64,000 nucleotides of DNA from Macrostomum lignano. Taxonomy: Eukaryota. The stretch is taken from the NCBI GenBank assembly GCA_002269645.1, contig NIVC01002971.1:62001-126000 (forward strand). The letters run 5' to 3'. This document shows, piece by piece, positions 5,444 through 34,399 of the stretch. Within the stretch, counting starts at the first letter, position 1, and each line of letters starts with the position of its first letter. Below the pieces are notes generated by a model. The model was not told the DNA's origin. It did no database searches and saw only the letters and a program-made list of their open reading frames with translations. Made by a program: the position numbers and the translations under genes.

Positions 5444-5489
5444 CTGAAACAATGCGGGTTGAATCTGTTTTAAATGATACATATGTCAC

Positions 5490-5905
5490 AAAGCAATAGA
5501 CACTGTCACAAAGCACAGACACTGTCACAAAGCACAGACACTGTCACAAAGCAACAGACACTGCCACAAAGCACAGATACTGTCACAAAGCAACAGACAC
5601 TGTCACAAAGCAACAGACACTGTCACAAAGCAATAGACACTGTCACAAAGCAACAGACACTGTCACAAAGCAACAGACACTGTCACAAAGCAACAGACAC
5701 TGTCACAAAGCAATAGACACTGTCACAAAGCAACAGACACTGTCACAAAGCACAGATACTGTCACAAAGCAACAGACACTGTCACAAAGCAATAGACACT
5801 GTCACAAAGCAACAGACACTGTCACAAAGCACAGACACTGTCACAAAGCAATAGACACTGTCACAAAGCAATAGACACTGTCACAAAGCAATAGACACTG
5901 TCACA
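5490..5905. repeat. Minisatellite, 19-20 bp unit AGACACTGTCACAAAGCA(A)(T/C)
   Basis: About 20 visible tandem copies. Confidence 0.95.
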
Positions 5906-8900
5906 ACATACTGTTACGGGCTACAGGGTGTCCCATTTACAGCTCAAGAAATTGACTTCACACCTGAGTAAGGCACCGCCCCACGCTTTTGCAATAGACA
6001 AAACTTCTTGGCACAACTTCAAAGCCCAGCTGTTTTTCAATTTCGCTTCGCAAATGATCCAAATGAGTGTCTGGTGGGACTCTGCAATGAGAAAGAAAGT
6101 TTGGCGAGATTGAAGCAATATTTCAATGAATTAATTAAACGAAATTGGCAGAAATATTTCACTCACCTAACGAAACCCGCAGATACGCTCTCTCCAATCA
6201 CTTGGTTGAAGGCACTGCGAAGACGGTCGTGCCACAGGTAAGCCGGCACAACATAGATGTGAAGATCCACCAACTGCAAACGAAATTGCATCTTAATTTT
6301 TTGACATTCATATTAATTTAGTAAATATAAGTTTAACAGTGCAATCCATTGCATAAGATAAAACAAAAATTAAATTTCAGCTTGTGTTTTTAGTGAGGTG
6401 TTTTATTTATTGCTAAGTGTGTTTTGAATGCATTATGAATTACAACTTGTACTTATAAATATATTCAACATTTTATTATTATTTTGTAGCATTATTAATA
6501 ACTACACGAAAATTAATGAAGACAAAGAAACTAAGCAAAATATTTAATTTTCTAGGGTTGATTTTTTGTTTACAGCTTTTGTTAAGTCTGAATTTTCTGT
6601 TGGCTATTAAAAAACTAAAAGAAGCTTTTGAACGTTGATAAGTTTCGTTATAAAGGGAGACTTGAACTTTATTCAGAAAATAATTATATAGTCCCTGTCA
6701 TTTGAAATAATTTCTTTCACAGGGCATTTTATACGAAAGTAGTCGTAGATATTTTTTACTTCTACAGTAACTAATAAAAGCAGGCGGCATTTACCTAAAT
6801 AGTAAGTAATTATTTCGTGAAAAGTACATGCAAATTAAAAAAATGTGTTAAATGACAAGCCAAAAAGTACTCTTGATTCTGGTAATCTGGTATTGAGTGT
6901 TTGACTATTTCAACTATTACGACAAGTTAAATTACAGCTGGAAAGTCCAAATTAAATCCAAGAGAAAGTAGTCACCGAGCCTCCTGAAAATATTACGAGC
7001 GTAAAAAAGGCTTGATAGTTCATTCCATTCCATAAATTCAATATGCTTACTTGTTCGGATGGTGGCCGGTATGTAGGTCTGTCATAGTTCATTCTTTCTT
7101 TCGTTAAAGTTAAAAACACTAGTCTGCTCTTTTATACAGTAATAAATGGTCAGTCGAAAACTATCGTCGATTTTTGAACAAAATAAATTATTTATCGCAC
7201 TTCTGCATCGTAACGAGTATTTAATCCCTTATGCAAATTCAATAAAATTTGAATTTAATTTGTTTGTATATTTTTTGTTGAGAAAAGCTTCAGTTTTGAG
7301 CTTAGAATGACTATCCAGATAACTTTGTTTAAATTAAGGCCAACAGGCCACACCGTTAAACAGCAAGACGACTGACAATTGACATCCTTAGATTATAGCA
7401 AGCCCTGTTGTTATTTGAATAATAGGAAGGCTATAATTAGCAACAATAAGTTTCATAATTAGATTTTCGATTTAAAATGAATGCATATGCATGTTTTCTA
7501 TACTCATCTAAGGCTTGCTTGAGATGTAATTAAGATATGTGTGAGATATTCAGAGATTTGTCTGAATAACCCACAGAATATCACAAATTAAAGAGGTATT
7601 CTGTGAAATCGCTTAATTATTGCGAGATTTTTTTCTTTTATTCCAGAGCACAGTGTACAAAAATGACGAGTTTTTTACAGTTTTTATAGGACGTAGACTC
7701 TGCAAAGTTTGTGTGATTTTTGATACAACTTCCTGGGAAAAAAGACACCGCGGAGATTGGAAAAAACCATATTCTGTCATCCTTATAATCAATGATTGCA
7801 TTTAATCTGGGTTAGTAAAGATTACTGTTCCTGTAATTTAGCAATGCACAAACATATGTTACTCTCTGCTATCTTATATTATATAGGTAATGTACATGTA
7901 GTCGTGTATATAAGTACATGGTATCGGCATGTATGCAGAAACAATACTCATTAAAAATATACCTACAATAGTGGCTTGAATACCTAAATGCAAATTTAAC
8001 TTTTTTACTACAAATATGCTTAATATCAAAACATAAAGTTAAGCTATAGCCTTTTGTGAGTATTAACAGTGATTATGAATTAATAACTGCATGTTTAAGT
8101 ATATGTACATGTAGCTGTACTCGTTTATAATGTACTATATTAATATACATGTACATGTACACTTTTAAACGTATACATTTTACTTCTGATGCCATTTGAC
8201 GCATATGTACATGTACAGTACAGTAATAACAGTATGGATATGGAAATCAGCCAGAACAGTGGCTCACGCAAACAGCAATTATTGGCTTGGGTACACATGT
8301 AGATGTACATGTTTATACTGCTTGAGACTTCAGGGTAACCCGAACATATACAGTACATGTACATAATGCGCGATAAGGCGCTTTCACACGGGCTCAATCA
8401 TATCAGGTAACCTTGATACATGTACAGGTATTAAACACAAGAAATAAAACAAATTTGTATCTCATATCCTTAAATTTGCGTTAGCCGATTAGTAACTCAA
8501 AAAGCGATACAATTACAATATTTAGGGTACAATATATGTCCAGTTTGCAGTAGTGTGTATTTTTCTATTAACCAAAGTACATAACTGATTCGTTAACAGT
8601 ATAAATCGATCTCAGTTAAAACATCGAGTATAGATGTTTATAGCCAGACAGGTAAGAATTTCTCTTGGGGCCAAACTTAAGCCCAGAGTAAAAACACGCG
8701 CAAGAGACGGAGTGGGTTGATAATAATGATTGAAAAAATAAACTGAAGCACCTGAAGGACAGACAGTTTCATGGGGGCTGACAATATTACGGCTGGTTGG
8801 CTGGCACATCAGCGATTAATAACAGTTAACACCTGCCCCTTGACTAATACTAAGCCAGTTGTTAAAAGAAGTTAAGTCCGCACAGAAGCGGTTAGCAGTG

Positions 8901-9601: not shown

Positions 9602-11260
9602 TCACTGATTGAGCAGGTGCTCGGTCGCCCGCTCCAGGTTCCACACGTTGGAGGACAGCGCCACGCGGCAGTCGTGCTGCAATCAAATTTTTCCCAGGAA
9701 TTGTGTCGGGTGGGAAGTCGAAAGGTGAAATATCGTTGGGATGTTGAATTACTGTGCTAGGTTTTGGGGATCTTTTAGGATCTGACAACCTTTAATTGTG
9801 GGGGATTTTGGGATTTGACAACCCTGTGGAATACTTTGGGGATATTCTGGGATCTGACAACCCTGTGGGAGATTTTGGGACTAGACAACCCTATGGGAGA
9901 TTTTGGGGATATTTTGGGATCTGACAACTCAGTGCGATATTTTGGGGATATTTTGTGATCCCTGTGGGAGATTTTGGGGATAGATGGAACTTAACAAATC
10001 TGTGGGAGATTTCGGGATATTTTGGGATCTGACAACACTGGGAGATTTTGAGAAAATTTTGGGATTGGACAACCCTGTAAGAGAATTTGGGTATATTGGG
10101 GATAATTTGCGATCTGACAACCCTATGAGATTTTAGGGATATTTTGAGATCTGACAACCCTGCGGGGCATTTTGGGATCTGAAATTCCTAAGAGATTTCG
10201 AGGATATTTCAGGATCTGACAACACTGTGAGGGATCTGATCCAAACGGGCCCCGGCCATTTTGGGAGATTTAATTTCACCAGAGCCAGACGCAGTTCCTG
10301 CCTCACCTCGGGAAATCCCATCTGTTTGAGCGACTCCACCTTGGCCTTGAGGTCGGGCTCCCTGTCCGGGGCGCCAGCATAGGCGTGGGCCCAGTGCCTG
10401 GCCGTCTGCAGGAACACGGCATGCTGCTCCCTGTACTGCTTGGCAACCACCGCGTCCTGCGGGTCGTCGGGTTCTGGCGAGGCCAGCAGGGCCTGCAGGG
10501 ACAGCAGCACGGTGCGCAGGGTCATTGCGGCTGCCCACTGGTCTTTGAGGATGTCTAAACAGATGGCACCGGTCACGGAGCTGATGTTCGGGTGCCAGAT
10601 CCTGGTGATGAACTTCACTTTTGGCGGCGTGAACGGATACGTGTCCGGGATCACCACCTCCAGCTGGCCGAGGAAGAAAATGAGGGGGAAGTTGAGGCAG
10701 CGCTTGAAGCATAAATCAATCATTTATATTTGCTATATTGCAATGTACCATACTTGAGCTGGTAAGCAACTGACTACCGACTTAAACCTAACCCCAACAA
10801 ATCATAAACCTAAACCCAAACTCTTAACTAAACCCTAACCTAAACCTAAAACCTAAATCTAAATTGCCGGCAGTCAATTATCGTTCCTTCCTATTATTTT
10901 CACAATACGTGCGTAAACATGTTCTTCTCACTCTACTGTTAGTAAAAATATTAGTTTTTTCTTTTGTTTTATGAAAATATCGGAAGGCTGAATTGAGGTT
11001 TGTTATTAAGGATACTTTTAATACTTTTTATGGAACATTCATGATGTAGCAAAGTGAGACACTGTGAGTGAAAATCCGGCCCCGCAAACCTGGAATTTGC
11101 CGTGCTCATAGGGCGTATCGGGTGGACCGCAGATTTCTCCACGCAGTTTTCGCAAATTATCGGAGACTGGCTCCACCCGGATGTGATGGCTGGCAATCTC
11201 GTTACTCTTCATCACCTCTTTGAACTCTCGCCTGATGCGTTGGTCTGCAATGTTGCTCAT
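9602..11260 (-). CDS. UBE2K: Ubiquitin-conjugating enzyme E2 K (HIP2/E2-25K), 3 exons, 200 aa, UBC + UBA domains
   Basis: Exon 1 11260-11090 (MSNIADQRIRREFKEV...GPPDTPYEHGKFQ, donor GTTTGC). Exon 2 10663-10307 (LEVVIPDTYPFTPPKVKFITRIWHPNISSVTGAICLDILKDQWAAAMTLRTVLLSLQALL...MGFPE, donor GTGAGG). Exon 3 9676-9602 (HDCRVALSSNVWNLERATEHLLNQ*). All phase 0; catalytic HPN...C motif intact; 57+119+24=200 aa. Confidence 0.96.
9760..10260. repeat. Degenerate ~29-40 bp minisatellite (GGGATCTGACAACCCTGTGGGAGATTTTG) in UBE2K intron 2
   Basis: Directly visible. Confidence 0.85.
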
Positions 11261-13030: not shown

Positions 13031-14800
13031 TTAAGAAGCTTTCAGTGGTGCGGTAGTTTCCTTTCCGAATGCGTCTTCAAGGGTTTCTCTTTGTGGAACA
13101 GCGATTTCTTCTGCTGCTCCAGTCCGTTGAGTCAAAAACGATTTGTTCCGACGTAGTAGCTTTCCTTGTTCATCGCGAACTATATAAGAACGGTCATTCA
13201 CTCTCATGTGCACTTCTGCTGGCTGCCATCGTCGTGTTGATTCTTGCATCCAAACCTTTTCTCCACAACCAAATTCTCTCCTCTCCTTAGATCCACGGTT
13301 GTAATATTCTTCGGCCTTGTTCTGCTGGTCCTTTAGCTTCTGCAGTACTTTCCTGAACATGACCTGTCTAGGAATTAGATCTGCTTTTGGGATCGGCAAA
13401 TCATAGCGCAGTTTGTGTCCAAAGACTAGCTCAGCGGGTGATGGCATTCCATGCTCGATAGGAGTGTTCTTGTAATGCAGCAGTGCCATGTGCTCGCCTT
13501 CATTGCTCTTCAGAACCTTCTTTAAAATATTCTTGATCGTTTGAACGCCTCTTTCCGCTAATCCGTTGGACTGGCTGTACTTCGGCGATGATGTAGCATG
13601 CTTGAAGCCGTACTCTTTCGCGAAACGACCAAATTCTCTTCCCGAGAATGGAGGTCCATTGTCAGATCTTAAAATCTCGCAAACTCCATAGGTCTGGAAA
13701 TACTTCTTTAGTTGGGGAATCACAGAGGCAGCTGAAGTATTGTTGATCTTAGCGTATTCGATCATCCGACTGTATTTATCAACATATATCAAGAAATTCT
13801 TCCCGTCAATATGGAAAATATCCGTGCCACATTCCTGAAATGGGTAGTCCGGTAGGCACTGAGCCACCATCGGTTCCTTCTGTGGCTTTCTTTGGCTTTC
13901 CTGGCAGGCAATGCACGCTGAAGTCATTTCTTGAATATCACATGTAATTCCAGGCCAGTAGACGCTCTCTGACGCCTTTAAGCTTGCCTTCACAATTCCA
14001 GGGTGTCCAGTATGCAGCTTCTGTAGCACTTCCATTCTCATTGAGTTTGGAACGACTATTCGGTTCTTCATCCAGATCAGATTGCCATGCGCAGTCAGAT
14101 CATGTCTGACGTTCCAGAAACAACGAAGCTCAGTCACGAGCTGGCTTCTGTGGTGAGGCCAACCAACACCGATGATCTCAGCGAGTTGTTGCAGTGTTGA
14201 GTCCTTTGCCGTTTCATTTTCCAGTTTCTGCATCAGTTCTGGGAATCCAACCGACATTCTAACACCGAGCACGTGACCTTCGATGTCATCTTCGAGTTGT
14301 TTAGAGGCATGTACGTTCTTTAAGAAAGCGCGGCTTAGAGTGTCTGGAATGTGCAAGTCTTTACCGGGAACGTATATAATGTGCAGGTCGTACTTCTGAA
14401 CTAGTAGCATCAGTCTCTGCAATCTTGCTGTAAGAGTTGAAATTGGCTTCCGGAAGATGTTCTCTAGCGGCTTGTGGTCGCTCTCGACCGTTACCTTGTG
14501 TCCCCAGACGTACTGGTGGAATCGCTTGCAGCCAAACACAATAGCCAAAAGTTCCTTTTCGATCTGAGCATACTTCCGTTGGGATGGCGTCAGTGATGAC
14601 GAAGCGTATTCCAGCGGGTGTCCATCTTGCAGGATAGTTGCTCCGAGACCGTGTTGACTAGCATCGACTGACAGAGTAAGTGGTGCATTCGGGTTATAGC
14701 GAGCTAAGACTGGTGCGTCGCAAAGACTCTGCACAATTGATTCGTACGCTTTTTCGTGTTCATTTGTCCAGTTCCACTGAGCATTCTTCGTCAGCAATGT
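13031..14800 (-). pseudogene. gypsy pol: RT thumb/RNase H/integrase portion
   Basis: LSVDASQHGLG, YAQIEKELLAIVFG, ESDHKPL (RNase H); HHCC zinc finger (LHTGH...CIAC); DDE motifs GTDIF, RSDNGP, SNGLAERGVQ. Confidence 0.95.
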
Positions 14801-15624
14801 AACGATATATACCGATTTTTTTCGGCAGCAATTGCGTAAGCTGAAGCCGCGTAGCGGCTGAAGCTTAGTAGAGCAATTGCTGCCAAAAAAATCGGTACAT
14901 GTCATTATTGTACCCTTTTGACTTCCCTTGTCTATGGCCCAGACATAGTGCGGATGCTGAGTATGAAATGCGATTGTTGCCGGAATGCGCTTTGAAAGGG
15001 TTGTAGAGATAATCAATCGTCTATGGCAAATTTAGTTGCTCTCTAAATGAAAGGGTTGTAGAGATAATTAATCGTTTATGGCAAATTTAAAGGACAGTGA
15101 AGACAGCTAGCCTGGCTGCCATGAGTTAATTCTCAAGTTGATTTTGAGCTTGAATTAATTCTCCTATTCGGAGTGCAAATAGGAAAAGTAGCTATGATTC
15201 GCTACGCAAACATTCCTGGCGGAGAAATATGTGGACTCTCCACGGACGAGTTGGCTTTTGTCACCCGAGAGTCGAGCACGCGCTACGTTCTGGAGATGGA
15301 CAACCTGGATGCGTCGTCCAGTTCCAACGGGCTGCCTGAGCTAGGTAGCGAAGATCTGGAAATGTTGGACCGACTTGAGAGTGACTCAGTGCCGAAATCG
15401 ACCGAGACGCAACGGAAGCTTCACGTGGCAAGGTTCCGACAGTTCCTCAACGAGAAGGGGCTCTGCCAGGAGTTTGAGCGTGTTCCGGATCGATTTTTGA
15501 ACGATTATCCTTGTTTTGATAGCCAAATACATTCGTCTGAAATCCGGCAACAATCGAAAAAAGCCGACAAACAATTAAATTGTTACCGCAAGTATGAATG
15601 CCGGAAACCATAGACAAAAGGGAA
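14801..15624 (+). mobile_element. Non-autonomous, internally deleted Crypton-like (tyrosine recombinase) element inserted in gypsy pol
   Basis: Flanked by direct repeat CAATGT (14795-14800 and 15625-15630); removing the insert and one repeat restores PLRTLLTKNAQW. ORF 15173-15613 aligns by eye to the N-terminus of the YR at 53084 (NIPGGEICGLSTDELAF vs NLPCEDLGNITQDELNF; ARFRQFL...LNDY vs QRFRDFL...LNQY). Confidence 0.8.
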
Positions 15625-17390
15625 CAATGTGCGTAGCGGTGCTGCTTTAGATGACAGATCCGAAATGAATTTGGACAAAAAATTTGCACATCCTAGAAAT
15701 CGCATAAGTTGCTGCTTTCTCTCATTGCCGGATAGAGTATCTGGTTGGGGCATATCGCGCATTGCTTTTACTTTGTCTGGGTCGACTTTAATTCCGGTGT
15801 GCGAAAGTATGTTGCCGAGGAATTTCAACTCCTTCAATCCGACTTTCCGCTTTTTATAATTCAGGCGCAAATTCTTCGCACGGCACATTTCCATAAGCTG
15901 CTTCACAGCTTCATCGTGTTCTTCAACAGTCTTGCCCCAAACAATGAAGTCGTCAATAAAATTGTTGCAGTTTCTGATCTTGTCCAAGATCTCCTCCCGA
16001 ACTCGCTTCTGGTAGACTTCCGATGCGGAACAAATTCCATAGGGCATTCTCAGCCAACGATATCGTCCAAAAGGTGTGTGAAAGCACGTCATCAACGAAC
16101 TTTCATAATCCAATGCAATCTGGTGAAAACTCGCAGTCGCATCAAAAGTTGAGAACAGAGCAGCGTTTCTGATTTCTGCAATAATTTCGTCATAAGACGG
16201 TATCTGATACTGCTCTCTCATTATGTTGGCATTCAGATGCTGAGGGTCTAGGCAAAGACGTATAGTCTTGTCTGCCTTTTAGACGACGACCACATTTGAA
16301 ACGTACTTCGTGGGCTCATCACACTTGGTGATGAGTCCATCCGAAACCAGGCGATCTAATTCAGCCTTCAAAGGTTGCATTGCTGCAAATTCTTTGTCAT
16401 CGCGCAGGCTGATGTGATAACTCCCAGGTAAGCAACCTGTTCCTTCAAAGACATTGGGATACTCTCGAAGAAATCTTTCATCTGTCCACGTGGACTTAAA
16501 CCCTTCAGGTTGAACAGAAACTCCGAAGTTGAATTTCACCAGGCCTATCTCTTCTGCAGTTTTCCATCCGATGAGTGGAATGAGCCTCTCTTTAATCACA
16601 ATAAATTCATTTTCATGCTTGACTCCTTCATATTCCAGTTTCAATTGTACCTTCCCTGCGACTGTTAGGCGCGACCTTTTATAGCAAAAGAGTCTACAAG
16701 ACGTTGCTTGTATCGACGTGTTTGGTGCAATCTGCCTAAGCAGATGTTCAGGGAGTACATTTGCATCCGCTCCTGTGTCGCATTTGCAATTCACCAGCTG
16801 ACCTTCGATTTTGATACCAACAGTTGTTCTACTATCTCTGTCGTTGCCACCCGGTCGCAGAGATGCTGACATGACCCACGAATCTTGACGATCAGATTCT
16901 GAGCTTTCATTTGTATTTCGATCCAAGGCTCTTACGGTCTTATTCCGACAAACGTTGCTGAATTGGTTTTGCTTTCCGCAAGATTTGCACGTCTTGCCAT
17001 ATGCAGGGCATGAACCTTTCTTGTGTTTCTTACCACAGAATGAGCAACCCTCCAACTTTCCTACCATCGGCTTTCCATTGGACCCAAACCTTTTGTTCGG
17101 TCGTCTCTCCTTGTACTTGAGATCTGGTCTGCCTGTTGAGCGAGGCTTCACAACAGAATTGACTTCTTTCTGGATGTATTTCGAAATCTCTCCGGAGGTG
17201 TTTCCCGTCATGATCCGCACTTGGGTCTTTGATGATTCACTTGCACGGCAGATAGATATAGCCTTATCTAGCGTCAACTCCTGCTCACGTAGAAGCCGTT
17301 CTCGCAACTCTGTGTCTCTGATTCCGAGGACTATCTGATCTCTGATTATTGATTTGTTCACCGTCAATTCGTAGGCTGGCTTCTCGCTTG
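15625..17390 (-). pseudogene. gypsy gag C-terminus (zinc knuckles), protease and reverse transcriptase, with an in-frame TAA at 16279-16281
   Basis: IRDQIVLGI, CSFCG...H...CPAYGKTCKSCGKQNQF, protease CDTGAD; reading VVVV*KADKTIRLCLDP; FHTPFGRYRWLRMPYG, FIDD. Confidence 0.93.
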
Positions 17391-20109
17391 CAACACACAT
17401 ACACACAGACAAACATCGCGTCAGTTTTAGTGTTAGGAGATATATATATATATATATATATACAATATTATGATAATTAAAAAGTGCACACAAACCATTT
17501 TAGTATAATGGATTCAGTTAAATACTATTTAAATCTAAAACTTATATAGCATTTATTATAAAAGCAGCTTAATTTAACATGTTTAAAAGTTTTACATAAA
17601 TTATAGGTAAACAACTCAATTGGTTTTTGGAAAAATCTTATTTTACATACTTGTTTATATAGGGGAAAAAGTATTTAATTTAAGAATAATAATAGTCCTA
17701 TTAGTATTTTCAATATAAGAGAAACTATCATAAAAAAAGAGATCATTATTATAATTATGACTTGGTATAATTACAATACACATGTAAATATTTGTTAATC
17801 AAACTTGCAGTGCCAAATTTGATTTCTATATATGTTTTAAATTGTCATTATATATAATACTATATATTTAATATATATACGTTGTTATATAATATATATG
17901 TATAATTATAATGTATCTAGATGGCATATAAATAGAACATATTTTCTCAAAAAATATTGACTTTACAAGAAAATATAATAGAATATTGAGTTTATTTAGG
18001 ATAAAAAAACTTATATATACAGTTGTTTTGTTGTTTCATTAGAGGCCTTTAAAATTAAAGCCTTTTTGTCATAAATTCATTTTGTTATTAAGTTAAATAG
18101 TAGGAAAGCATAGAGTCTATATGATTTTTAAGTTTTAATTGAGTGAGATGAATATTCTAGGACAATAATTTGATTTCTTCCTGAATTAAGTCAAAATGTA
18201 TCAGTAAAGAAACTTTTTTTCTCAAGTTAAGTGTTCTAAAGAAAAACCATACTATATATATTATATATTAAAAAAGGATTAATGAGCTGTGTTATCATCT
18301 ACCTTAGGCCTACTTTGAACTTTTGAGTTTAAAGCTGAGTATAGTCAAAATTGTTTAATGATGATTTGATGACCAAATGTGCAAAACTTAAACATTTAAT
18401 GTGATGACTTCAACCAAAACTAAAAGCAAGGGCATCAATATTATAAGATCAATTTATAGCATACAAAACAAATCTGAATTAATTTTAGCGCCCTAGCCTA
18501 GCCTGGCAATAAAATATTTGAATTAGAATACAAGCTTTTTGTTTTAATTTCTCAGATTGTTGCAGCTATAGGCCTAACTCTCCAAGTTGCAGCTATAACT
18601 AGATACATTATTTATTATTATAATACATTGTTTTTTTAATAAAATAATCGCTCCTTTATAATCGCTCCTATAATATAGCTGAAGAATGACGTTATATAGC
18701 TCATATATAAAAACAAATTATGTAGGTGCAATTAACAGGGTAGTAGTTACCCATACTACGGCATATCTATAGTTAGTCAAGATGCAATACTTGAATCTAA
18801 GAAAGCCAATTACTTTTAATTTTCATTATTTTTTACTACCACGATATAACAATTACTTTAACTGTATTAAATAAAAAGCTTTAATTTAATGCTATTAGCT
18901 ATGTATTACGTTTTTAAAACAGTATAACTTTATATTACCAGTCTAAACTATCTCAAATTTACATTACTCTAGCTTGTGACTGCGGGCCCTTTTGATCGCT
19001 GGCCTGACACTTGGTGGCGCGTCCTCAGTGGGCGAAGCCAAAGTAGTAGAGAAGGACAGAATACACCCACACAGAAGCACCATTCGATCACTCGAAGCAG
19101 CTCAAAGCAATTTGGAAGGTCTTCTTTTTTGACTGGCCTAGGCTACAGTAATTACATGTAAGGCCGCAGACGCACGTGTGTACATGTACACACGTGCACC
19201 AAAATTTTTTTTGGAACATGCGGCTTACTCGTTAGTTTCAGAGTCAAGCAGCGGTGTAGAAGTTTTCGCTTTCTAGGATTTTGATGCTCCAGCTCTATAG
19301 CTATCTGAATCGACGTACGGACCATGCAGCTCCGATCCATGAGCTTACCCCGAACTGCAATATGGTACTGTAACATTAATTAATTGGTAGTAGTAAGAAG
19401 TAAAGGAAGGTGCGTGCATGTCCATGTACCGTGGACATGTACCGTCTGCTTCACGTAAAGCAGTATAAGAGAAACTTCTGTTGGTTCAACCCTAAACAAC
19501 AATTTGAGTCAACTTCTATAATTCCTCACCGATTCCACACTAGCGGCCCCAAATTATACTGATGAGGACGCACTTTTTTCCAAATCCCGCGCTAGCACAT
19601 GGGCTCTAAACTTATTTGCCTACTAACAGTGGGCAATGGGCATTTTTATCCTTTTTCTGCGAATTTTCATAGAATCTATACTAGATATAATGTCTGGCCA
19701 TACTACTAGTAGTCATAATAACATAGGCTCAGCTTTTTGGGTCATAAATCATCGCTTGCGAAGCTGGTCTGACAGCCACCTGCGCCTCACTCAGTGTTGA
19801 GGCGGGCGCCAGATGGTCTGAGAGGATGCGGGCGGTAGCTTTTTTTCAGAGCCTATTGTTCGTGTTCACTCAAGCGTGTGACAGCTTTGACAGCTATGCG
19901 TTTTACCCCTAAAAGTACCTTGGGATTAGCGATTAGCGATTTCTCTTCATTATCTTCACTTTCTATTTAATAAGAGCTTTCTAATGTATATTTTTTCATT
20001 AATTTCTGTCAATCCTACGCGAAAGGTCATAAATCATTTTGTTGCGATTTTGAGTGATTTATGGCCGCACCTGTCATCTTTTTACGACCCTGTGGGAACT
20101 GATAGGATC

Positions 20110-20260: not shown

Positions 20261-22509
20261 CCCGCTCGGACTCAACTTTGGCTCGGGCCCAGCGCGCAAC
20301 TTCTGGTTCCCAGAGCACGACCGTCGTTTCTTAATCCCCGGATTGCGACTTCCCCCATCATCATCAAGGACGAGTCCCCGGTCGACAGCAGCGAACATCA
20401 AGCAAAGATCATCACCTGCTAGCTAACAGCGAAGATTGTGACGGCATCATTCCGAATCTACAGCTGCAGAGCATCGAGCCGATTCGGTCGCTGTGGATTA
20501 CCTGGTCTCCGGCTGTTGAGTTTCTGATTGGTTGGGTGAGAGGCTACCTAGACTTGCTTGATTGGGTGATCCCTTGTCTGTCCCCTGTTGCAGTAGCTGA
20601 ATTAGGCGCACACTTTTGCTCATTTTGTTCAGTGGTGCTGTTACTGAGGCAGAAATCATTCAATAATACTGCCAGTAGTCTGAAACTCCAATTCGATCCG
20701 AAGTGTGAAGTGATCTAAGGAGAAGGTTAAATCTGACAGTTATTTTTATCGGTTTTAGTTCTTTGTTCGCCGATGGCTCAGATGAGTAGCTAAGCTAGTA
20801 GGCGCCGGTCACAGTGGACCAATGGCAAGGCGGTTCTCAGTCGATCAATCAATCAAATCAGTGAGCAAAACTGCCAGAAGTGCAGAATCGGCGCCAGAGA
20901 TGTACTTTGTGCACTCTAGGTTAGCCAAGCGGCTCGGGTAATGAATCATGCGGTCTCTGAAGTTCGAGTTAGTCTATCATCAGCGCTATGAGAGGCTAGT
21001 TGGCGCGTTGAAGGCCAAAAGTACATATCTTCGTATTTAGCAATGTAATAGTACATGTAGCTACCCCATAGACTCGCCACTGCAAGAATCCCCTGCACAA
21101 GTCCCCTCTGTACCTGCATGGCCAATGCGATCTAGTCCCAGCAGTGTCCCTTATCATCGGCTATGACTTCGAGATTGACAGCAAAAAGACACTAGTTGGC
21201 AGGTAAGTGCAAAGCCCCTTCTAGTCGGAAGCCCGATTTCGAGAGTCCCGGTGTGGTGAGCCAGGGCGTACGGGCTGGTGGCAGCAAGTTAGTTGATCTG
21301 CGGATTAGCTAATTTCTACTTTCAAAATTCTCCCTGCTCATCTCTCGCTGTCCCTCTCTTAGCTATAGGACCTAGACTGCTCGCCACACGATCAAGCTAC
21401 CATGGGGCTGACCATCTGACAGGAGTGGGGGCCAGGTCTCTAATTGATTTATTTCTGAGCCTGAGGCTCGAAGGCTTCCCTAACAAGGAGCCCGAAGGTC
21501 GAAACCCATCAATACATTTACATGTACATGTAGCACATAATTTATCAAATTGCGCAGTCATTGTGGGAGTCATTCAATATCAGTGTAGGTTTTGCAAGTG
21601 ACTTTTTCCAGCTTTGGAACAAATGAAATTCTCACCCAAATCCCGCAGCTGCCTTTGATATGATCCCGACTCCACAATCGTACATGTACATGTAAAAAAC
21701 CCATGCACTGTGCCCTTCTCACCTGTAGCTAGCCTTTTTATTAGAGCCAGGGGGCTGTGTGCACCCTGCCACACTAATTTAAGCGAGATTCAAATGGTAA
21801 TTCATCAAAACATTATAGTTAAGACACGTCAGTCCCGGCAGTTGCGGGGGACACATGAAGTTGCCCAAAAGTTCACCAAAGCAGTCACACATTGACGCAT
21901 ACATACGACAGCATGTGCAGTCGGCATTACATGTACACCAGAGCACAACACGGTAAAGCAACCTCCCAAGAAATTCTATCATAGAAATAGTACAAAATTA
22001 CCAAAATTAGCAATTGACGGGAAATTTATCAAAGCACAGCAATAATTCGAAAATTGTTTTACCTTTGTCTACAGCAAGACCATAGCTAAATTGCAACAGT
22101 ACTCAAAGTAGTATGTGGTCTACATGTATATACATTTGGAGAAAAACAACACGGCTTCACACTAAATAATTGCATGCATTTTCGAATTGCTTCCCCAAAC
22201 ACGATTAATGACGAATCTATGCATGAAAAATTGCAGAGCACCGCAAGCACGCGCATCCGTGATGACAGAGAGCACTTTCCTGGAGCTCCTTTCGGCAGAA
22301 AAAACAGTGCAAAACATTCTGTGGCCTTGGCCTTCAATTACAAGGAATTTGTTCGCATGAAGTGAAAACAGAAAAAAGTAGTGCCTGAAAATTTAAAAGG
22401 AGGACTAGCTTCATGACCTTAATGAGAATTGCTCTATTAAGCTGCATCTGACAACGGATCAATGGCGTCAAGACAGACAGACCGACACTAAGACACATAG
22501 ACAGGTAGT

Positions 22510-23400
<891 letters not shown>

Positions 23401-24168
23401 GCGGCTTCAGCTTACGCAATTGCTGCCAAAAAAAATCGGTACATGTCATTATTGTACCCTTTTGACTTCCCTTGTCTATGGCCCAGACATAGTGCGGATG
23501 CTGAGTATGAAATGCGATTGTTGCCGGAATGCGCTTTGAAAGGGTTGTAGAGATAATCAATCGTCTATGGCAAATTTAGTTGCTCTCTAAATGAAAGGGT
23601 TGTAGAGATAATTAATCGTTTATGGCAAATTTAAAGGACAGTGAAGACAGCTAGCCTGGCTGCCATGAGTTAATTCTCAAGTTGATTTTGAGCTTGAATT
23701 AATTCTCCTATTCGGAGTGCAAATAGGAAAAGTAGCTATGATTCGCTACGCAAACATTCCTGGCGGAGAAATATGTGGACTCTCCACGGACGAGTTGGCT
23801 TTTGTCACCCGAGAGTCGAGCACGCGCTACGTTCTGGAGATGGACAACCTGGATGCGTCGTCCAGTTCCAACGGGCTGCCTGAGCTAGGTAGCGAAGATC
23901 TGGAAATGTTGGACCGACTTGAGAGTGACTCAGTGCCGAAATCGACCGAGACGCAACGGAAGCTTCACGTGGCAAGGTTCCGACAGTTCCTCAACGAGAA
24001 GGGGCTCTGCCAGGAGTTTGAGCGTGTTCCGGATCGATTTTTGAACGATTATCCTTGTTTTGATAGCCAAATACATTCGTCTGAAATCCGGCAACAATCG
24101 AAAAAAGCCGACAAACAATTAAATTGTTACCGCAAGTATGAATGCCGGAAACCATAGACAAAAGGGAA
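23401..24168 (+). mobile_element. Duplicated copy of the Crypton-like derivative, lacking the left hairpin arm
   Basis: ORF 23717-24157 is identical to 15173-15613; same right junction (CAATGT at 24169-24174). Confidence 0.8.
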
Positions 24169-25934
24169 CAATGTGCGTAGCGGTGCTGCTTTAGATGACA
24201 GATCCGAAATGAATTTGGACAAAAAATTTGCACATCCTAGAAATCGCATAAGTTGCTGCTTTCTCTCATTGCCGGATAGAGTATCTGGTTGGGGCATATC
24301 GCGCATTGCTTTTACTTTGTCTGGGTCGACTTTAATTCCGGTGTGCGAAAGTATGTTGCCGAGGAATTTCAACTCCTTCAATCCGACTTTCCGCTTTTTA
24401 TAATTCAGGCGCAAATTCTTCGCACGGCACATTTCCATAAGCTGCTTCACAGCTTCATCGTGTTCTTCAACAGTCTTGCCCCAAACAATGAAGTCGTCAA
24501 TAAAATTGTTGCAGTTTCTGATCTTGTCCAAGATCTCCTCCCGAACTCGCTTCTGGTAGACTTCCGATGCGGAACAAATTCCATAGGGCATTCTCAGCCA
24601 ACGATATCGTCCAAAAGGTGTGTGAAAGCACGTCATCAACGAACTTTCATAATCCAATGCAATCTGGTGAAAACTCGCAGTCGCATCAAAAGTTGAGAAC
24701 AGAGCAGCGTTTCTGATTTCTGCAATAATTTCGTCATAAGACGGTATCTGATACTGCTCTCTCATTATGTTGGCATTCAGATGCTGAGGGTCTAGGCAAA
24801 GACGTATAGTCTTGTCTGCCTTTTAGACGACGACCACATTTGAAACGTACTTCGTGGGCTCATCACACTTGGTGATGAGTCCATCCGAAACCAGGCGATC
24901 TAATTCAGCCTTCAAAGGTTGCATTGCTGCAAATTCTTTGTCATCGCGCAGGCTGATGTGATAACTCCCAGGTAAGCAACCTGTTCCTTCAAAGACATTG
25001 GGATACTCTCGAAGAAATCTTTCATCTGTCCACGTGGACTTAAACCCTTCAGGTTGAACAGAAACTCCGAAGTTGAATTTCACCAGGCCTATCTCTTCTG
25101 CAGTTTTCCATCCGATGAGTGGAATGAGCCTCTCTTTAATCACAATAAATTCATTTTCATGCTTGACTCCTTCATATTCCAGTTTCAATTGTACCTTCCC
25201 TGCGACTGTTAGGCGCGACCTTTTATAGCAAAAGAGTCTACAAGACGTTGCTTGTATCGACGTGTTTGGTGCAATCTGCCTAAGCAGATGTTCAGGGAGT
25301 ACATTTGCATCCGCTCCTGTGTCGCATTTGCAATTCACCAGCTGACCTTCGATTTTGATACCAACAGTTGTTCTACTATCTCTGTCGTTGCCACCCGGTC
25401 GCAGAGATGCTGACATGACCCACGAATCTTGACGATCAGATTCTGAGCTTTCATTTGTATTTCGATCCAAGGCTCTTACGGTCTTATTCCGACAAACGTT
25501 GCTGAATTGGTTTTGCTTTCCGCAAGATTTGCACGTCTTGCCATATGCAGGGCATGAACCTTTCTTGTGTTTCTTACCACAGAATGAGCAACCCTCCAAC
25601 TTTCCTACCATCGGCTTTCCATTGGACCCAAACCTTTTGTTCGGTCGTCTCTCCTTGTACTTGAGATCTGGTCTGCCTGTTGAGCGAGGCTTCACAACAG
25701 AATTGACTTCTTTCTGGATGTATTTCGAAATCTCTCCGGAGGTGTTTCCCGTCATGATCCGCACTTGGGTCTTTGATGATTCACTTGCACGGCAGATAGA
25801 TATAGCCTTATCTAGCGTCAACTCCTGCTCACGTAGAAGCCGTTCTCGCAACTCTGTGTCTCTGATTCCGAGGACTATCTGATCTCTGATTATTGATTTG
25901 TTCACCGTCAATTCGTAGGCTGGCTTCTCGCTTG
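24169..25934 (-). pseudogene. Duplicated gypsy gag-PR-RT fragment
   Basis: ORFs 24127-24765 and 24823-26037 are identical to 15583-16221 and 16279-17493, including the premature stop. Confidence 0.93.
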
Positions 25935-28900
25935 CAACACACATACACACAGACAAACATCGCGTCAGTTTTAGTGTTAGGAGATATATATATATATATA
26001 TATATACAATATTATGATAATTAAAAAGTGCACACAAACCATTTTAGTATAATGGATTCAGTTAAATACTATTTAAATCTAAAACTTATATAGCATTTAT
26101 TATAAAAGCAGCTTAATTTAACATGTTTAAAAGTTTTACATAAATTATAGGTAAACAACTCAATTGGTTTTTGGAAAAATCTTATTTTACATACTTGTTT
26201 ATATAGGGGAAAAAGTATTTAATTTAAGAATAATAATAGTCCTATTAGTATTTTCAATATAAGAGAAACTATCATAAAAAAAGAGATCATTATTATAATT
26301 ATGACTTGGTATAATTACAATACACATGTAAATATTTGTTAATCAAACTTGCAGTGCCAAATTTGATTTCTATATATGTTTTAAATTGTCATTATATATA
26401 ATACTATATATTTAATATATATACGTTGTTATATAATATATATGTATAATTATAATGTATCTAGATGGCATATAAATAGAACATATTTTCTCAAAAAATA
26501 TTGACTTTACAAGAAAATATAATAGAATATTGAGTTTATTTAGGATAAAAAAACTTATATATACAGTTGTTTTGTTGTTTCATTAGAGGCCTTTAAAATT
26601 AAAGCCTTTTTGTCATAAATTCATTTTGTTATTAAGTTAAATAGTAGGAAAGCATAGAGTCTATATGATTTTTAAGTTTTAATTGAGTGAGATGAATATT
26701 CTAGGACAATAATTTGATTTCTTCCTGAATTAAGTCAAAATGTATCAGTAAAGAAACTTTTTTTCTCAAGTTAAGTGTTCTAAAGAAAAACCATACTATA
26801 TATATTATATATTAAAAAAGGATTAATGAGCTGTGTTATCATCTACCTTAGGCCTACTTTGAACTTTTGAGTTTAAAGCTGAGTATAGTCAAAATTGTTT
26901 AATGATGATTTGATGACCAAATGTGCAAAACTTAAACATTTAATGTGATGACTTCAACCAAAACTAAAAGCAAGGGCATCAATATTATAAGATCAATTTA
27001 TAGCATACAAAACAAATCTGAATTAATTTTAGCGCCCTAGCCTAGCCTGGCAATAAAATATTTGAATTAGAATACAAGCTTTTTGTTTTAATTTCTCAGA
27101 TTGTTGCAGCTATAGGCCTAACTCTCCAAGTTGCAGCTATAACTAGATACATTATTTATTATTATAATACATTGTTTTTTTAATAAAATAATCGCTCCTT
27201 TATAATCGCTCCTATAATATAGCTGAAGAATGACGTTATATAGCTCATATATAAAAACAAATTATGTAGGTGCAATTAACAGGGTAGTAGTTACCCATAC
27301 TACGGCATATCTATAGTTAGTCAAGATGCAATACTTGAATCTAAGAAAGCCAATTACTTTTAATTTTCATTATTTTTTACTACCACGATATAACAATTAC
27401 TTTAACTGTATTAAATAAAAAGCTTTAATTTAATGCTATTAGCTATGTATTACGTTTTTAAAACAGTATAACTTTATATTACCAGTCTAAACTATCTCAA
27501 ATTTACATTACTCTAGCTTGTGACTGCGGGCCCTTTTGATCGCTGGCCTGACACTTGGTGGCGCGTCCTCAGTGGGCGAAGCCAAAGTAGTAGAGAAGGA
27601 CAGAATACACCCACACAGAAGCACCATTCGATCACTCGAAGCAGCTCAAAGCAATTTGGAAGGTCTTCTTTTTTGACTGGCCTAGGCTACAGTAATTACA
27701 TGTAAGGCCGCAGACGCACGTGTGTACATGTACACACGTGCACCAAAATTTTTTTTGGAACATGCGGCTTACTCGTTAGTTTCAGAGTCAAGCAGCGGTG
27801 TAGAAGTTTTCGCTTTCTAGGATTTTGATGCTCCAGCTCTATAGCTATCTGAATCGACGTACGGACCATGCAGCTCCGATCCATGAGCTTACCCCGAACT
27901 GCAATATGGTACTGTAACATTAATTAATTGGTAGTAGTAAGAAGTAAAGGAAGGTGCGTGCATGTCCATGTACCGTGGACATGTACCGTCTGCTTCACGT
28001 AAAGCAGTATAAGAGAAACTTCTGTTGGTTCAACCCTAAACAACAATTTGAGTCAACTTCTATAATTCCTCACCGATTCCACACTAGCGGCCCCAAATTA
28101 TACTGATGAGGACGCACTTTTTTCCAAATCCCGCGCTAGCACATGGGCTCTAAACTTATTTGCCTACTAACAGTGGGCAATGGGCATTTTTATCCTTTTT
28201 CTGCGAATTTTCATAGAATCTATACTAGATATAATGTCTGGCCATACTACTAGTAGTCATAATAACATAGGCTCAGCTTTTTGGGTCATAAATCATCGCT
28301 TGCGAAGCTGGTCTGACAGCCACCTGCGCCTCACTCAGTGTTGAGGCGGGCGCCAGATGGTCTGAGAGGATGCGGGCGGTAGCTTTTTTTCAGAGCCTAT
28401 TGTTCGTGTTCACTCAAGCGTGTGACAGCTTTGACAGCTATGCGTTTTACCCCTAAAAGTACCTTGGGATTAGCGATTAGCGATTTCTCTTCATTATCTT
28501 CACTTTCTATTTAATAAGAGCTTTCTAATGTATATTTTTTCATTAATTTCTGTCAATCCTACGCGAAAGGTCATAAATCATTTTGTTGCGATTTTGAGTG
28601 ATTTATGGCCGCACCTGTCATCTTTTTACGACCCTGTGGGAACTGATAGGATCTCTCGGTCACGTGATTCTGGGTAGCAACAAGCTTAGCCAATCAGAAA
28701 ATTCGGCGCTCATTTTAACAAAACGGCTCAGCCAATCAGAATCGACGTGTTCCATTATAACAAACTGCGGTCCAGTTGGCGGCTATTTAAACCGGAGTTT
28801 TTGGCCCGCTCGGACTCAACTTTGGCTCGGGCCCAGCGCGCAACTTCTGGTTCCCAGAGCACGACCGTCGTTTCTTAATCCCCGGATTGCGACTTCCCCC

Positions 28901-31055
28901 ATCATCATCAAGGACGAGTCCCCCGGTCGACAGCAGCGAACATCAAGCAAAGATCATCACCTGCTAGCTAACAGCGAAGATTGTGACGGCATCATTCCGA
29001 ATCTACAGCTGCAGAGCATCGAGCCGATTCGGTCGCTGTGGATTACCTGGTCTCCGGCTGTTGAGTTTCTGATTGGTTGGGTGAGAGGCTACCTAGACTT
29101 GCTTGATTGGGTGATCCCTTGTCTGTCCCCTGTTGCAGTAGCTGAATTAGGCGCACACTTTTGCTCATTTTGTTCAGTGGTGCTGTTACTGAGGCAGAAA
29201 TCATTCAATAATACTGCCAGTAGTCTGAAACTCCAATTCGATCCGAAGTGTGAAGTGATCTAAGGAGAAGGTTAAATCTGACAGTTATTTTTATCGGTTT
29301 TAGTTCTTTGTTCGCCGATGGCTCAGATGAGTAGCTAAGCTAGTAGGCGCCGGTCACAGTGGACCAATGGCAAGGCGGTTCTCAGTCGATCAATCAATCA
29401 AATCAGTGAGCAAAACTGCCAGAAGTGCAGAATCGGCGCCAGAGATGTACTTTGTGCACTCTAGGTTAGCCAAGCGGCTCGGGTAATGAATCATGCGGTC
29501 TCTGAAGTTCGAGTTAGTCTATCATCAGCGCTATGAGAGGCTAGTTGGCGCGTTGAAGGCCAAAAGTACATATCTTCGTATTTAGCAATGTAATAGTACA
29601 TGTAGCTACCCCATAGACTCGCCACTGCAAGAATCCCCTGCACAAGTCCCCTCTGTACCTGCATGGCCAATGCGATCTAGTCCCAGCAGTGTCCCTTATC
29701 ATCGGCTATGACTTCGAGATTGACAGCAAAAAGACACTAGTTGGCAGGTAAGTGCAAAGCCCCTTCTAGTCGGAAGCCCGATTTCGAGAGTCCCGGTGTG
29801 GTGAGCCAGGGCGTACGGGCTGGTGGCAGCAAGTTAGTTGATCTGCGGATTAGCTAATTTCTACTTTCAAAATTCTCCCTGCTCATCTCTCGCTGTCCCT
29901 CTCTTAGCTATAGGACCTAGACTGCTCGCCACACGATCAAGCTACCATGGGGCTGACCATCTGACAGGAGTGGGGGGCCAGGTCTCTAATTGATTTATTT
30001 CTGAGCCTGAGGCTCGAAGGCTTCCCTAACAAGGAGCCCGAAGGTCGAAACCCATCAATACATTTACATGTACATGTAGCACATAATTTATCAAATTGCG
30101 CAGTCATTGTGGGAGTCATTCAATATCAGTGTAGGTTTTGCAAGTGACTTTTTCCAGCTTTGGAACAAATGAAATTCTCACCCAAATCCCGCAGCTGCCT
30201 TTGATATGATCCCGACTCCACAATCGTACATGTACATGTAAAAAACCCATGCACTGTGCCCTTCTCACCTGTAGCTAGCCTTTTTATTAGAGCCAGGGGG
30301 CTGTGTGCACCCTGCCACACTAATTTAAGCGAGATTCAAATGGTAATTCATCAAAACATTATAGTTAAGACACGTCAGTCCCGGCAGTTGCGGGGGACAC
30401 ATGAAGTTGCCCAAAAGTTCACCAAAGCAGTCACACATTGACGCATACATACGACAGCATGTGCAGTCGGCATTACATGTACACCAGAGCACAACACGGT
30501 AAAGCAACCTCCCAAGAAATTCTATCATAGAAATAGTACAAAATTACCAAAATTAGCAATTGACGGGAAATTTATCAAAGCACAGCAATAATTCGAAAAT
30601 TGTTTTACCTTTGTCTACAGCAAGACCATAGCTAAATTGCAACAGTACTCAAAGTAGTATGTGGTCTACATGTATATACATTTGGAGAAAAACAACACGG
30701 CTTCACACTAAATAATTGCATGCATTTTCGAATTGCTTCCCCAAACACGATTAATGACGAATCTATGCATGAAAAATTGCAGAGCACCGCAAGCACGCGC
30801 ATCCGTGATGACAGAGAGCACTTTCCTGGAGCTCCTTTCGGCAGAAAAAACAGTGCAAAACATTCTGTGGCCTTGGCCTTCAATTACAAGGAATTTGTTC
30901 GCATGAAGTGAAAACAGAAAAAAGTAGTGCCTGAAAATTTAAAAGGAGGACTAGCTTCATGACCTTAATGAGAATTGCTCTATTAAGCTGCATCTGACAA
31001 CGGATCAATGGCGTCAAGACAGACAGACCGACACTAAGACACATAGACAGGTAGT

Positions 31056-33660
<2,605 letters not shown>

Positions 33661-34399
33661 GGACGAACAGACAACAGACAGAGACTGACCTACATAGTCA
33701 GACACTAGCACAACAATTCCTAAAGTCTGCTTGTGCCCGACCATAAGTACATGCGTCGACATTGCGCATATCTATCTGATCTATGCATTTCACACCTGCG
33801 CGCAGAGAAGAGCTTCCTAATTGCTAATTTCATAGCCAGCCGCGGGCCACCTTCAAGACCAGCTGTTTGACAGAGCAGGCGCAGACTGTCGCACTGTTTT
33901 CCTGGGACTCGGGAATCAAAGCAATGCCATCACAAAGGCCAGCCGGTTTGCAGTTTTAAGCATTTATATCATCACAGACATCAAATTACTGCGCCTCCTG
34001 GGCTGGGTGATTCTCATTTCTGCTTTGAGCAAATTACCTAATTAACAGCGCTGATTTCCGATACCTGCTGCTTTCTACTTGAGTTCCGGCTTCAAGAATG
34101 TCCTAGCATTGAAGTAAAGTATCACTCGCGAAAGTGGGAATCGAGTAAGGGGTTGCTAATCGGGGGTTGCTAGTTCCTGGTTCCCGAGATCGAGGGAGGC
34201 TGCCAGAGCTTCTGCTGGCTGGGGTCCTGGCTGTGCTTGGCCTGGCGGGTCAGCCTCCTGCAGCAACAACCGCAGCGGGAGGGCAGCAGTGCAGGATGAG
34301 CATCTTTTTTGAGTGCTCAGTGGAAACACTAAGAGAAGCGATGCTTTGCTAAGAGCGGCTAAACTAGCGTCCGCTGTGGGGTGAGTTGAGGGTCATGGT

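Follow-up and report, generated by a model that had tools for sequence, protein, structure and literature searches.

What is the 824-bp insert that interrupts a gypsy pol gene in the 64-kb stretch of DNA analysed here (the window), and does the CAATGT on either side of it represent the crossover core of a recombinase or a target-site duplication? Our analysis favors the view that the insert is a defective Crypton-like tyrosine-recombinase (YR) element with a CAATG(T) crossover core. Animal Cryptons have been regarded as elements whose ends cannot be defined; here a broken reading frame fixes the ends of the insert to the base.

Exact ends in a gypsy pol frame

The host gypsy copy lies on the minus strand, with the C-terminal part of pol (RNase H and integrase) at 13031-14800 and a 5'-truncated gag, the protease and part of the RT at 15631-17493. 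Pfam recognises RVT_1 to one side of the insert, and RNase H and integrase to the other; the gag/protease/RT part contains one in-frame stop (16279-16281). The body of the insert (14801-15624, plus strand) is bounded by a left CAATGT at 14795-14800, a hybrid of target and element sequence, and a right CAATGT at 15625-15630, both on the plus strand and both placed by exact match and restoration of the frame. Excising 14801-15630 in silico (830 bp, the 824-bp body plus one core) yields a gapless pol frame on the minus strand in which ...SSKAAPLRTL is followed directly by LTKNAQWNWT..., and the pol of a second gypsy in the window (PLSTLRRKNCEFVWT) aligns gap-free across the junction of this rejoined frame. 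The target therefore carried exactly one CAATGT before insertion. For any given insert, the chance of being flanked by a 6-bp repeat is about 1 in 4096.

These results bear on an initial annotation that had proposed an 824-bp insert with CAATGT on both sides splitting gypsy between PLRTL and LTKNAQW, and had read it as an internally deleted Crypton-like derivative that integrated after the gypsy and left unambiguous junctions. Both claims held, now with exact coordinates and a restored frame. Its description of the insertion as datable failed: the host copy is 5'-truncated and a search around it for an LTR pair found none, so only a relative order can be given, in which the gypsy copy came first and the insert later.

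The truncated ORF and its full-length relative

The coding remnant of the insert is a truncated YR ORF (15194-15613, plus strand) whose homologous part spans 15194-15508 and is followed by out-of-context read-through to a stop. This part comprises 105 codons, close to the 100 or so initially annotated, and matches the N-terminus of the spliced YR encoded at 53084-54540 with 29% identity (E 7e-11), ending near 15508. It matches L015 (E 4e-26) and P0012 (E 4e-17), the latter bearing DUF3504, QRICH1 and Phage_integrase domains, and among homologues it is closest to DUF3504-positive members. The initial annotation had stated that a lack of similarity to DUF3504/YR proteins would refute its reading; that test was passed at the level of the family, through L015 and P0012, and not by the window YR itself. 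A protein-database homology search with the insert ORF alone returned zero matches, and an exact-protein look-up with this ORF and with exon 1 of the full YR returned no record.

What remains of such an element in the insert is about 708 bp from the 5' side (a hairpin, three GTCTATGGCA-type motifs, a leader and the 105 codons) and about 116 bp from the 3' side. As only 105 N-terminal YR codons remain, it is non-autonomous, and we consider it likely to belong, as an internally deleted copy, to a clade of CryptonA-like YR transposons whose full elements are small (about 1.7-2.1 kb). Two 42-nt matching segments on the plus strand (14993-15034 and 15048-15089, with 55-bp spacing), each containing a G-T-(C/T)-TATGGCA motif, are putative recombinase-binding sites. 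No second independent copy of the insert's exact family was present among the data examined.

A full-length relative, which we take as autonomous, occupies 52732-54799 on the plus strand (2.06 kb; a 2,063-bp element), with CAATG cores at 52732-52736 and 54795-54799, a hairpin at 52740-52842, an inverse core at 52845-52849 and two mutually complementary segments, T' at 52850-52866 and T at 54774-54794. Its sole ORF is a YR gene of 461 aa (53084-54540, plus strand), composed of exon 1 (53084-54147), a GT..AG intron (54148-54218) and exon 2 (54219-54540). The protein contains the catalytic set R229, K263, H352, R355, Q378 (H in relatives) and Y387, of which R229, K263, H352 and Y387 are invariant and R355 nearly invariant, and an alignment to XerA covers box II and the catalytic Tyr (E 3.5e-7). 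Its predicted AlphaFold model matches Cre over approximately 350 columns (E 1.7e-9), and the fold search ranked Cre above IntI4 and also recovered the Tn1549 integrase as a structural match. By sequence and model together, this is a Cre-like recombinase with all catalytic residues present.

The window YR falls below Pfam thresholds (Phage_integrase 19.2 bits vs 27.1; no DUF3504 match), whereas its ten homologues match Phage_integrase in nine cases, QRICH1 in eight and DUF3504 in four (best E 4e-13), and Pfam assigned only recombinase-type families to the homologue set. Homologues P0005 and P0006 are from Macrostomum lignano. Pfam gave no match to GCR1_C or another added C-terminal domain in the window YR or its homologues, the C-terminal tail having instead a short conserved F-x-N-C-x-F, and examination of ORFs and Pfam matches in the 2,063-bp element identified no RT, RNase H, methyltransferase or DDE transposase. 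The position and phase of the intron are common to the full YR and L001, a 71%-identical relative from a different sample, which argues for propagation at the DNA level. At E <= 1e-30 the YR family comprises 1,346 clusters (50% identity), and a scan of viral contigs and prokaryote genomes found no relatives.

The terminal core, the 5' hairpin and the inferred circle junction

Across the seven families for which both ends are defined, every one of the 14 junctions has CAAT, with G or A as the next base. The cores read CAATGT/CAATGT in the insert and in L010, CAATGG/CAATGC in the full element and CAATGT/CAATG(T/A) in family A (L004-L007, which have different flanks), and CAAT(A/T) was recorded for L012, L014 and L016. 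The initial annotation had left open whether CAATGT was a crossover core or a target duplication; because neither end departs from CAAT[G/A] in the seven related families, we favor a conserved recombination crossover core over a random target duplication as the more probable identity of the repeat. The six-base core proposed at first holds only in part, as the sixth base, T at both ends of the insert, varies elsewhere and the shared core is CAATG, a sequence that occurs only 65 times in the window. This support is not fully independent: ends of the metagenomic elements L010-L016 were set partly by the T/T' complementarity rule and partly by seeking CAAT, and only the insert, through its broken ORF, and family A, through its diverging flanks, have independently defined ends. 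No dyad-symmetric pair of binding sites was found around the core, unlike in classical loxP or FRT.

Roughly 10 nt inside its 5' end, the insert contains a hairpin of roughly 100 nt (14810-14897, plus strand; left arm 14810-14842, tip 14843-14861, right arm 14862-14897) with a DNA folding energy of -37.4 kcal/mol (z -10.7). The tip, GA-AGCCGC-gta-GCGGCT-GA on the plus strand, combines a tandem G.A mismatch, a GC clamp and a G-N-A loop, and conforms to a consensus in which GA stands on either side of a GC-rich stem closed by a G-N(1-2)-A loop. This consensus recurs in about 11 families, where the expectation is 0.36 hits per 36 kb. The motif is confined to the ORF strand, the GA/GA tandem mismatch is invariant and the flanking pairs covary. 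L013 has a variant tip (AA/GC), and the motif is absent from L008, L011, L017, L002 and L003, some of these contigs being incomplete. Rfam returned only sub-threshold look-alikes for the hairpins, and their identity as microRNA precursors was rejected. Within the window, a scan for further CAATG...CATTG hairpins recovered only the full element, and a third candidate element, at 43040-43695, lacks a matching post-hairpin segment and is a fragment at most.

The hairpin is conserved as part of a larger pattern, in which it is followed by an inverted core, CATTG, and the last 20-25 nt or so of the element pair with the post-hairpin segment. CAATG...CATTG stands at the hairpin base in the full element, family A, element B of L004 and L010. 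In the insert, the post-hairpin segment T' (14898-14937, plus strand) contains the first GTCTATGG motif together with an inverse core in degenerate form (CATTATTG), and forms an inverted match with the 3' terminal segment T, CCATAGACAAAAGGGAA (15608-15624, plus strand), which bears the inverted GTCTATGG motif. The claim that the element has no terminal inverted repeats thus held for the extreme ends, which are neither inverted nor direct repeats of each other, and overlooked the 5' hairpin and the T/T' complementarity. When circle junctions were built in silico, their folds were more stable by 3-12 kcal/mol than those of the integrated 5' junction or of a shuffled 3' end in all seven families (z -3.3 to -6.4). 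The stem runs about 20 bp past the core, and a mismatch or bulge lies directly 3' of CAATG. In a circularised element, the circle itself being inferred, a single long palindrome would therefore span the junction and hold the core within its stem. The literature searched, which did not extend to Repbase Reports, contained nothing relevant on a hairpin or palindrome in Cryptons, and the end hairpin is probably new for animal Cryptons within that literature, with a prior description not excluded. Because they recur in about 11 families from independent data sets, the core, 5' hairpin and junction palindrome offer an annotation signature for these elements and their short derivatives, and a defined substrate with which a eukaryotic YR transposase could be studied biochemically.

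We infer that the insert most likely moved as an excised circle, relying on the recombinase of an autonomous relative acting in trans, and the copy at 52.7-54.8 kb, in which the GTCTATGGCA motif of the insert is also present, is a candidate donor. Strand exchange would then take place between the circle-junction core CAATG(T), expected to read ...AAAAGGGAA-CAATGT-AACGATAT..., and the CAATGT in the gypsy RT/RNase H linker; as this would leave one hybrid core at each end, the 6-bp repeat would be the crossover core itself, with no fill-in duplication involved. A role of the hairpin in site recognition is likewise inferred. L006 starts ATAA-CAATGT-AGAG, in which ATAA equals the element's own 3' end; this 4-nt match is a possible hint of a circle and no more, and no circular junction was observed.

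Known systems and rival explanations

The elements satisfy these criteria for Cryptons (a YR catalytic set in the full element, short terminal direct repeats, no long terminal repeats and no RT, RNase H, methyltransferase or DDE transposase), the circular intermediate being inferred, and fail those for DIRS elements, as both RT and long inverted terminal repeats are missing. They resemble CryptonA in their size of about 2 kb, a single YR gene, the lack of a C-terminal DNA-binding domain and a YR whose homologues link it to DUF3504/QRICH1, and an affinity to CryptonA is likely, although they were not placed against reference CryptonA sequences. Kojima and Jurka (2011; PMC3212892) described CryptonA-1_OL (2073 bp), CryptonA-2_SP (2263 bp) and short non-autonomous derivatives with internal deletions, and reported animal Cryptons to be without direct or inverted terminal repeats (listed as 'n.d.'), none being found even among 50 copies; in contrast, CAAT[G/A] is constant at the ends of the clade studied here, a conserved hairpin lies near the 5' end, and the 3' end can pair with the segment that follows this hairpin. 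CryptonS and CryptonF have 5-6-bp terminal direct repeats that are likewise constant within groups (TATGG in most CryptonS) and act as recombination substrates in Goodwin's circle model, yet these elements of oomycetes, diatoms and fungi differ in protein group and core, carry an additional GCR1_C or C48 peptidase, and have no hairpin mentioned in the literature searched.

Outside Cryptons, the likeness to integron attC sites and IntI extends to an imperfect palindrome, a core with an inverse core, an unpaired spacer at the crossover box, strand-specific unpaired bases, arms that vary while structure is conserved, and head-to-tail arrays. Integrons are bacterial, their cassettes lack a recombinase and no stem comparable to the roughly 20 bp past the core seen here is found in them, and we regard the resemblance as an analogy of mechanism, not membership, with single-strand use unproven. 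By a similar analogy, attP(+) of CTX phage, the substrate of XerCD, is a YR site formed by single-strand folding with an unpaired centre, although that system relies on host recombinases and the ssDNA genome of a filamentous phage, and no ssDNA stage is known here. Tn916 and Tn1549 share a YR acting on a circular intermediate (inferred in our case), but are bacterial conjugative elements with variable coupling sequences, where the clade described here has a constant core.

Of the alternatives to our account, the most durable retains the same element and core and takes a folded single strand as the recombination substrate, with the ORF-strand hairpin presenting CAATG/CATTG paired beside an unpaired spacer; by analogy with attC and CTX attP(+), one strand exchange would be followed by replication. 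This is possible and untested. In its favor are the palindrome over the circle junction in 7/7 families, the mismatch or bulge adjoining CAATG in the stem, the missing duplex dyad symmetry around the core, and the GA/GA mismatch and G-N(1-2)-A loops, whose flanking pairs covary and which have no counterpart on the other strand; GA/GA and G-N-A motifs stabilise folded strands. In L004 and L013, elements also stand back to back, joined at their cores, much like cassette arrays. Against it, there is no direct evidence of single-stranded intermediates, covariation and asymmetry could equally serve a duplex site, a cruciform or orientation, the stem outruns that of attC, Cre outranks IntI4 in the fold search, and L008, L011 and L017 lack the motif. 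A bolder version, which is possible at best and also untested, envisions a widespread eukaryotic YR clade with a strand-specific hairpin site over the circle junction, used as a folded single strand, in which CAATG/CATTG would pair beside an unpaired spacer below a GA/GA-bulged, GC-clamped G-N-N-A tip. If true, it would be the first eukaryotic case of an attC/CTX attP(+)-type mechanism, and folded-strand recombination by a eukaryotic transposon is now open to test.

A true target-site duplication, made by a staggered cut with a preference for CAATG and by repair synthesis, is unlikely. The 6-bp direct repeat looks like one, the sixth base differs between the ends of other copies, and the cutter could be a non-YR transposase, the element merely carrying a captured YR fragment; however, the end architecture is homologous to that of autonomous YR-only elements, there are neither terminal inverted repeats nor a transposase gene, the core recurs in inverted form within the element, beside the hairpin, and CAAT is invariant at the junctions of all seven families. 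Less plausible still is a DIRS-like, RNA-mediated route in which the post-hairpin segment would play the part of the DIRS1 internal complementary region and bridge both ends while an RT provided in trans copies the element. Background in the Glomhopper paper gives complementarity between the joined termini and an internal segment as the hallmark of DIRS1, with DIRS elements using related YRs, but DIRS elements carry RT, RNase H, methyltransferase and long inverted terminal repeats, whereas the 2.06-kb element encodes none of these enzymes and lacks long inverted or split direct repeats, and two species retain the YR intron with its position and phase unchanged.

A partial second copy of the insert, from hairpin tip to right core (23400-24174, plus strand), is part of a tandem duplication and not a separate insertion: an 8.5-kb near-identical tandem repeat begins exactly at the hairpin tip, and the only differences between its copies are three indels in homopolymer length, as is typical of errors in long reads. 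The hairpin arm is changed at 23400. Whether the 8.5-kb repeat is itself a genuine duplication or an assembly artefact is undecided. The repeat is the one point in favor of regarding the insert as an artefact or chimera, a possibility all but excluded by the exactness of both junctions, the restored frame and the same architecture in independent elements from other data sets.

Insertion site and coding content

The 824-bp Crypton-like insert (14801-15624) lies between two plus-strand copies of CAATGT (14795-14800 and 15625-15630) within a gypsy-type element on the minus strand, whose Pfam domains comprise RVT_1 (15631-16221) and RNase H, integrase zinc finger and rve (13031-14800). The initial annotation had claimed that an insert with CAATGT on both sides splits the gypsy reverse transcriptase (RT) between PLRTL and LTKNAQW, and this held: deleting 14801-15630 in silico restored the gypsy frame, joining ...AAPLRTL directly to LTKNAQWNW.... 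Because the protein read from the restored frame aligns, gap-free over the junction, with the pol of an unrelated second gypsy at 34.7-39.4 kb (33% identity), the target had a single CAATGT, and the inserted DNA amounts to 824 bp plus one additional core copy. The accompanying claim that the insertion is datable failed. The host gypsy (13031-17493, minus) is truncated in gag at its 5' end, carries, between the protease and RT regions, a single in-frame stop (16279-16281), and yielded no LTR pair when one was searched for; therefore dating is limited to the order of events. The second gypsy (34680-39380, plus), of a different family, has 269-bp LTRs that are 99.6% identical and a pol reading frame split between 36881 and 37025.

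Within the insert, the first 105 codons of an ORF (15194-15613) align to the N-terminus of the tyrosine recombinase (YR) encoded at 53084-54540 (29%, E 7e-11), this likeness stops at ~15508, and the final ~116 bp of the insert are 3' non-coding sequence. This is the layout of a classic internal-deletion derivative, and the N-terminal homology supports the earlier proposal of an internally deleted, YR-related element. The closest relatives of the ORF are a metagenome element, L015 (42%, E 4e-26), and a protein homologue (P0012; 41%, E 4e-17) with DUF3504, QRICH1 and Phage_integrase domains. By itself the insertion is an ordinary Crypton event. In the literature we searched, an animal-type Crypton clade with defined ends and a conserved hairpin architecture is not described.

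Element ends, hairpin and palindrome of the in silico circle junction

Element ends were fixed independently only for the insert, by its broken ORF, and for family A (four contigs from different sequencing runs, L004-L007), by diverging flanks; those of the remaining families were set by a T/T'-type complementarity rule relating the 3' end to the post-hairpin segment. Family A begins with CAATGT followed by AGAGATG and ends with GACGATAA followed by CAATG(T/A), with flanks that differ among the four contigs. The full element is bounded by CAATGG (52732) and CAATGC (54795), the L010 element by CAATGT at both ends, and three others (L012, L014, L016) by CAAT(A/T). CAAT stands at 14/14 element junctions, which resolves the initial alternative of crossover core or target duplication in favour of a conserved core; CAATG occurs only 65 times in the 64-kb window. 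The reference survey of animal Cryptons reports no terminal repeats whatever (Kojima & Jurka 2011, PMC3212892). The constant CAAT ends resemble the TATGG termini of CryptonS, and the pattern is consistent with Goodwin's model of recombination between a short core of the element and a target of identical sequence.

Contig L006 starts (1-17) with ATAA, CAATGT and AGAG, where ATAA is the element's own 3' end; this hints only weakly at a junction with one core, either head-to-tail or circular. In L004 (1690-2121) and L013 (1906-2045) the 3' core of one element is immediately the start of a second element or palindrome; in L004 this second one, element B, differs from the family A element before it and has a hairpin and an ORF of its own. 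Such arrangements suggest insertion into resident cores, forming arrays.

The initial annotation missed a long hairpin ~10 nt inward of the 5' end and a palindrome spanning the junction. Folded as DNA, the hairpin reaches -37.4 kcal/mol (z -10.7) in the insert, -61.7 (z -15.1) in the full element, where the stem is a perfect 36 bp, -33.5 (z -11.1) in family A, -22.2 (z -8.6) in element B of L004 and -42.7 (z -10.6) in L009. Just past the hairpin, an inverted CATTG pairs with the 5' CAATG; the insert's inverse core is degenerate (CATTATTG). Upon in silico circularisation the stem extends into the 3' end, so that in the insert CCATAGACAAAAGGGAA-CAATG lies opposite CATT(ATT)G-...TTGTCTATGG, and in the full element GCCATGAACAAATATTTCGGG-CAATG lies opposite CATTG-CAGGAAATATCTATGGC. 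Compared with the integrated 5' junction or a shuffled 3' end, the fold of the circle junction is more stable by 3-12 kcal/mol in 7/7 families (z -3.3 to -6.4), and the stem position after CAATG is always a mismatch or bulge. The hairpin tip is itself conserved (GA, 5-7-bp GC-rich stem, G-N(1-2)-A loop, complementary stem, GA), recurring in 13 loci representing ~11 families, all upstream of the ORF and none on the opposite strand, against an expectation of 0.36 hits per 36 kb of shuffled sequence. Outside the constant GA/GA, 3-4 pairs covary across families. After the hairpin come three motifs of the GTCTATGGCA type, with a single inverted copy at the 3' end; they are plausible, though putative, recombinase-binding sites, and the motif is common to the insert and the full element.

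A proposed recombinase in trans and competing readings

The full element (52732-54799, plus; 2,063 bp) appears to be an intact autonomous Crypton-like element and, carrying the insert's GTCTATGGCA motifs, is a candidate trans source of recombinase. Its 461-aa YR is encoded by two plus-strand exons (53084-54147 and 54219-54540) separated by a 71-nt GT..AG intron. This intron is kept, in position and phase, in L001, a relative from another sample (71% identity), which argues for propagation at the DNA rather than the RNA level. An alignment of ten YR sequences shows no variation at R229, K263, H352 and Y387 and next to none at R355; the profile of this alignment matches XerA (E 3.5e-7), pairing NHCIR with PHVLR and TGQ...Y with LGH...Y. 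The AlphaFold model (mean pLDDT 66.7; core mostly >80) matches Cre in structure comparison (E 1.7e-9 across ~350 columns), as well as Tn1549 Int, IntI4, XerA and XerH. The YR itself scores under Pfam thresholds; its homologues match Phage_integrase (9/10), QRICH1 (8/10) and DUF3504 (4/10). The nearest named relatives of this YR, at ~50% identity, come from the flatworm Macrostomum lignano and are annotated as "Tyr recombinase domain-containing". The family is large, with 1,346 clusters at E <= 1e-30, and a search of viral and prokaryote collections found no relatives.

The best-supported explanation, which we consider likely, is that an excised circle would have integrated at CAATG(T) by site-specific YR recombination, with recombinase provided in trans. 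What the hairpin does is an inference rather than a demonstrated function, and we cannot exclude that it acts as a cruciform, in duplex, or at the RNA level. A more doubtful reading, by analogy with integron attC and CTX attP(+), holds that the working form would be the folded ORF-strand hairpin; in its favour are a palindrome present only in the joined form, a core-adjacent mismatch resembling an unpaired spacer, the strand-specific GA/GA mismatch and G-N-A loops, a core without a surrounding dyad-symmetric duplex site, and the back-to-back placement of elements at cores in L004 and L013.

Tandem repeat and neighbouring features

The segment 14873-23399 recurs at 23416-31945 as an 8.5-kb tandem repeat, 99.965% identical, whose copies differ only in three homopolymer-length indels. 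The left breakpoint falls exactly at the hairpin tip, which is joined to a (GACA)n tract, and the right breakpoint lies within a (GACA)n tract. The first 28 nt of the second-copy arm (23400-23427) are the reverse complement of the copy-1 left arm and not the copy-1 right arm, from which they differ by TC for GA and a missing 5-nt bulge. We cannot decide between a real palindrome-tip rearrangement and an assembly artefact; whichever its origin, the second insert copy is not an independent insertion.

Elsewhere, approximately ten 39-bp tandem repeats (43111-43513), each with GTCTATGGCC, are followed at 43679-43695 by GTCATTAACATG and CAATG, a Crypton-3'-end-like sequence with 12 nt identical to L001. 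Because neither a matching hairpin nor a post-hairpin segment was found at 43111-43695, the region could represent a fragment in which binding-site repeats have been amplified. At 1722-1933, a possible Crypton-related remnant has nested palindromes whose order is reversed (CATTG...CAATG; fold z -3.6); CAATGCATTG lies at their centre, and the inverted pair GTCTATGGC / GCCATAGA comes after them. The region is very repeat-rich, with several satellite and microsatellite arrays that include long (GACA)n tracts (5481-5906, 22350-23399, 31200-33700, 40095-42877, 49510-51475 and 57372-59465). An IAP-like ORF (BIR + RING; 61389-62135, plus), without close relatives in a database search, and a ubiquitin-conjugating enzyme exon (10133-10723, minus) indicate an animal-type host genome.
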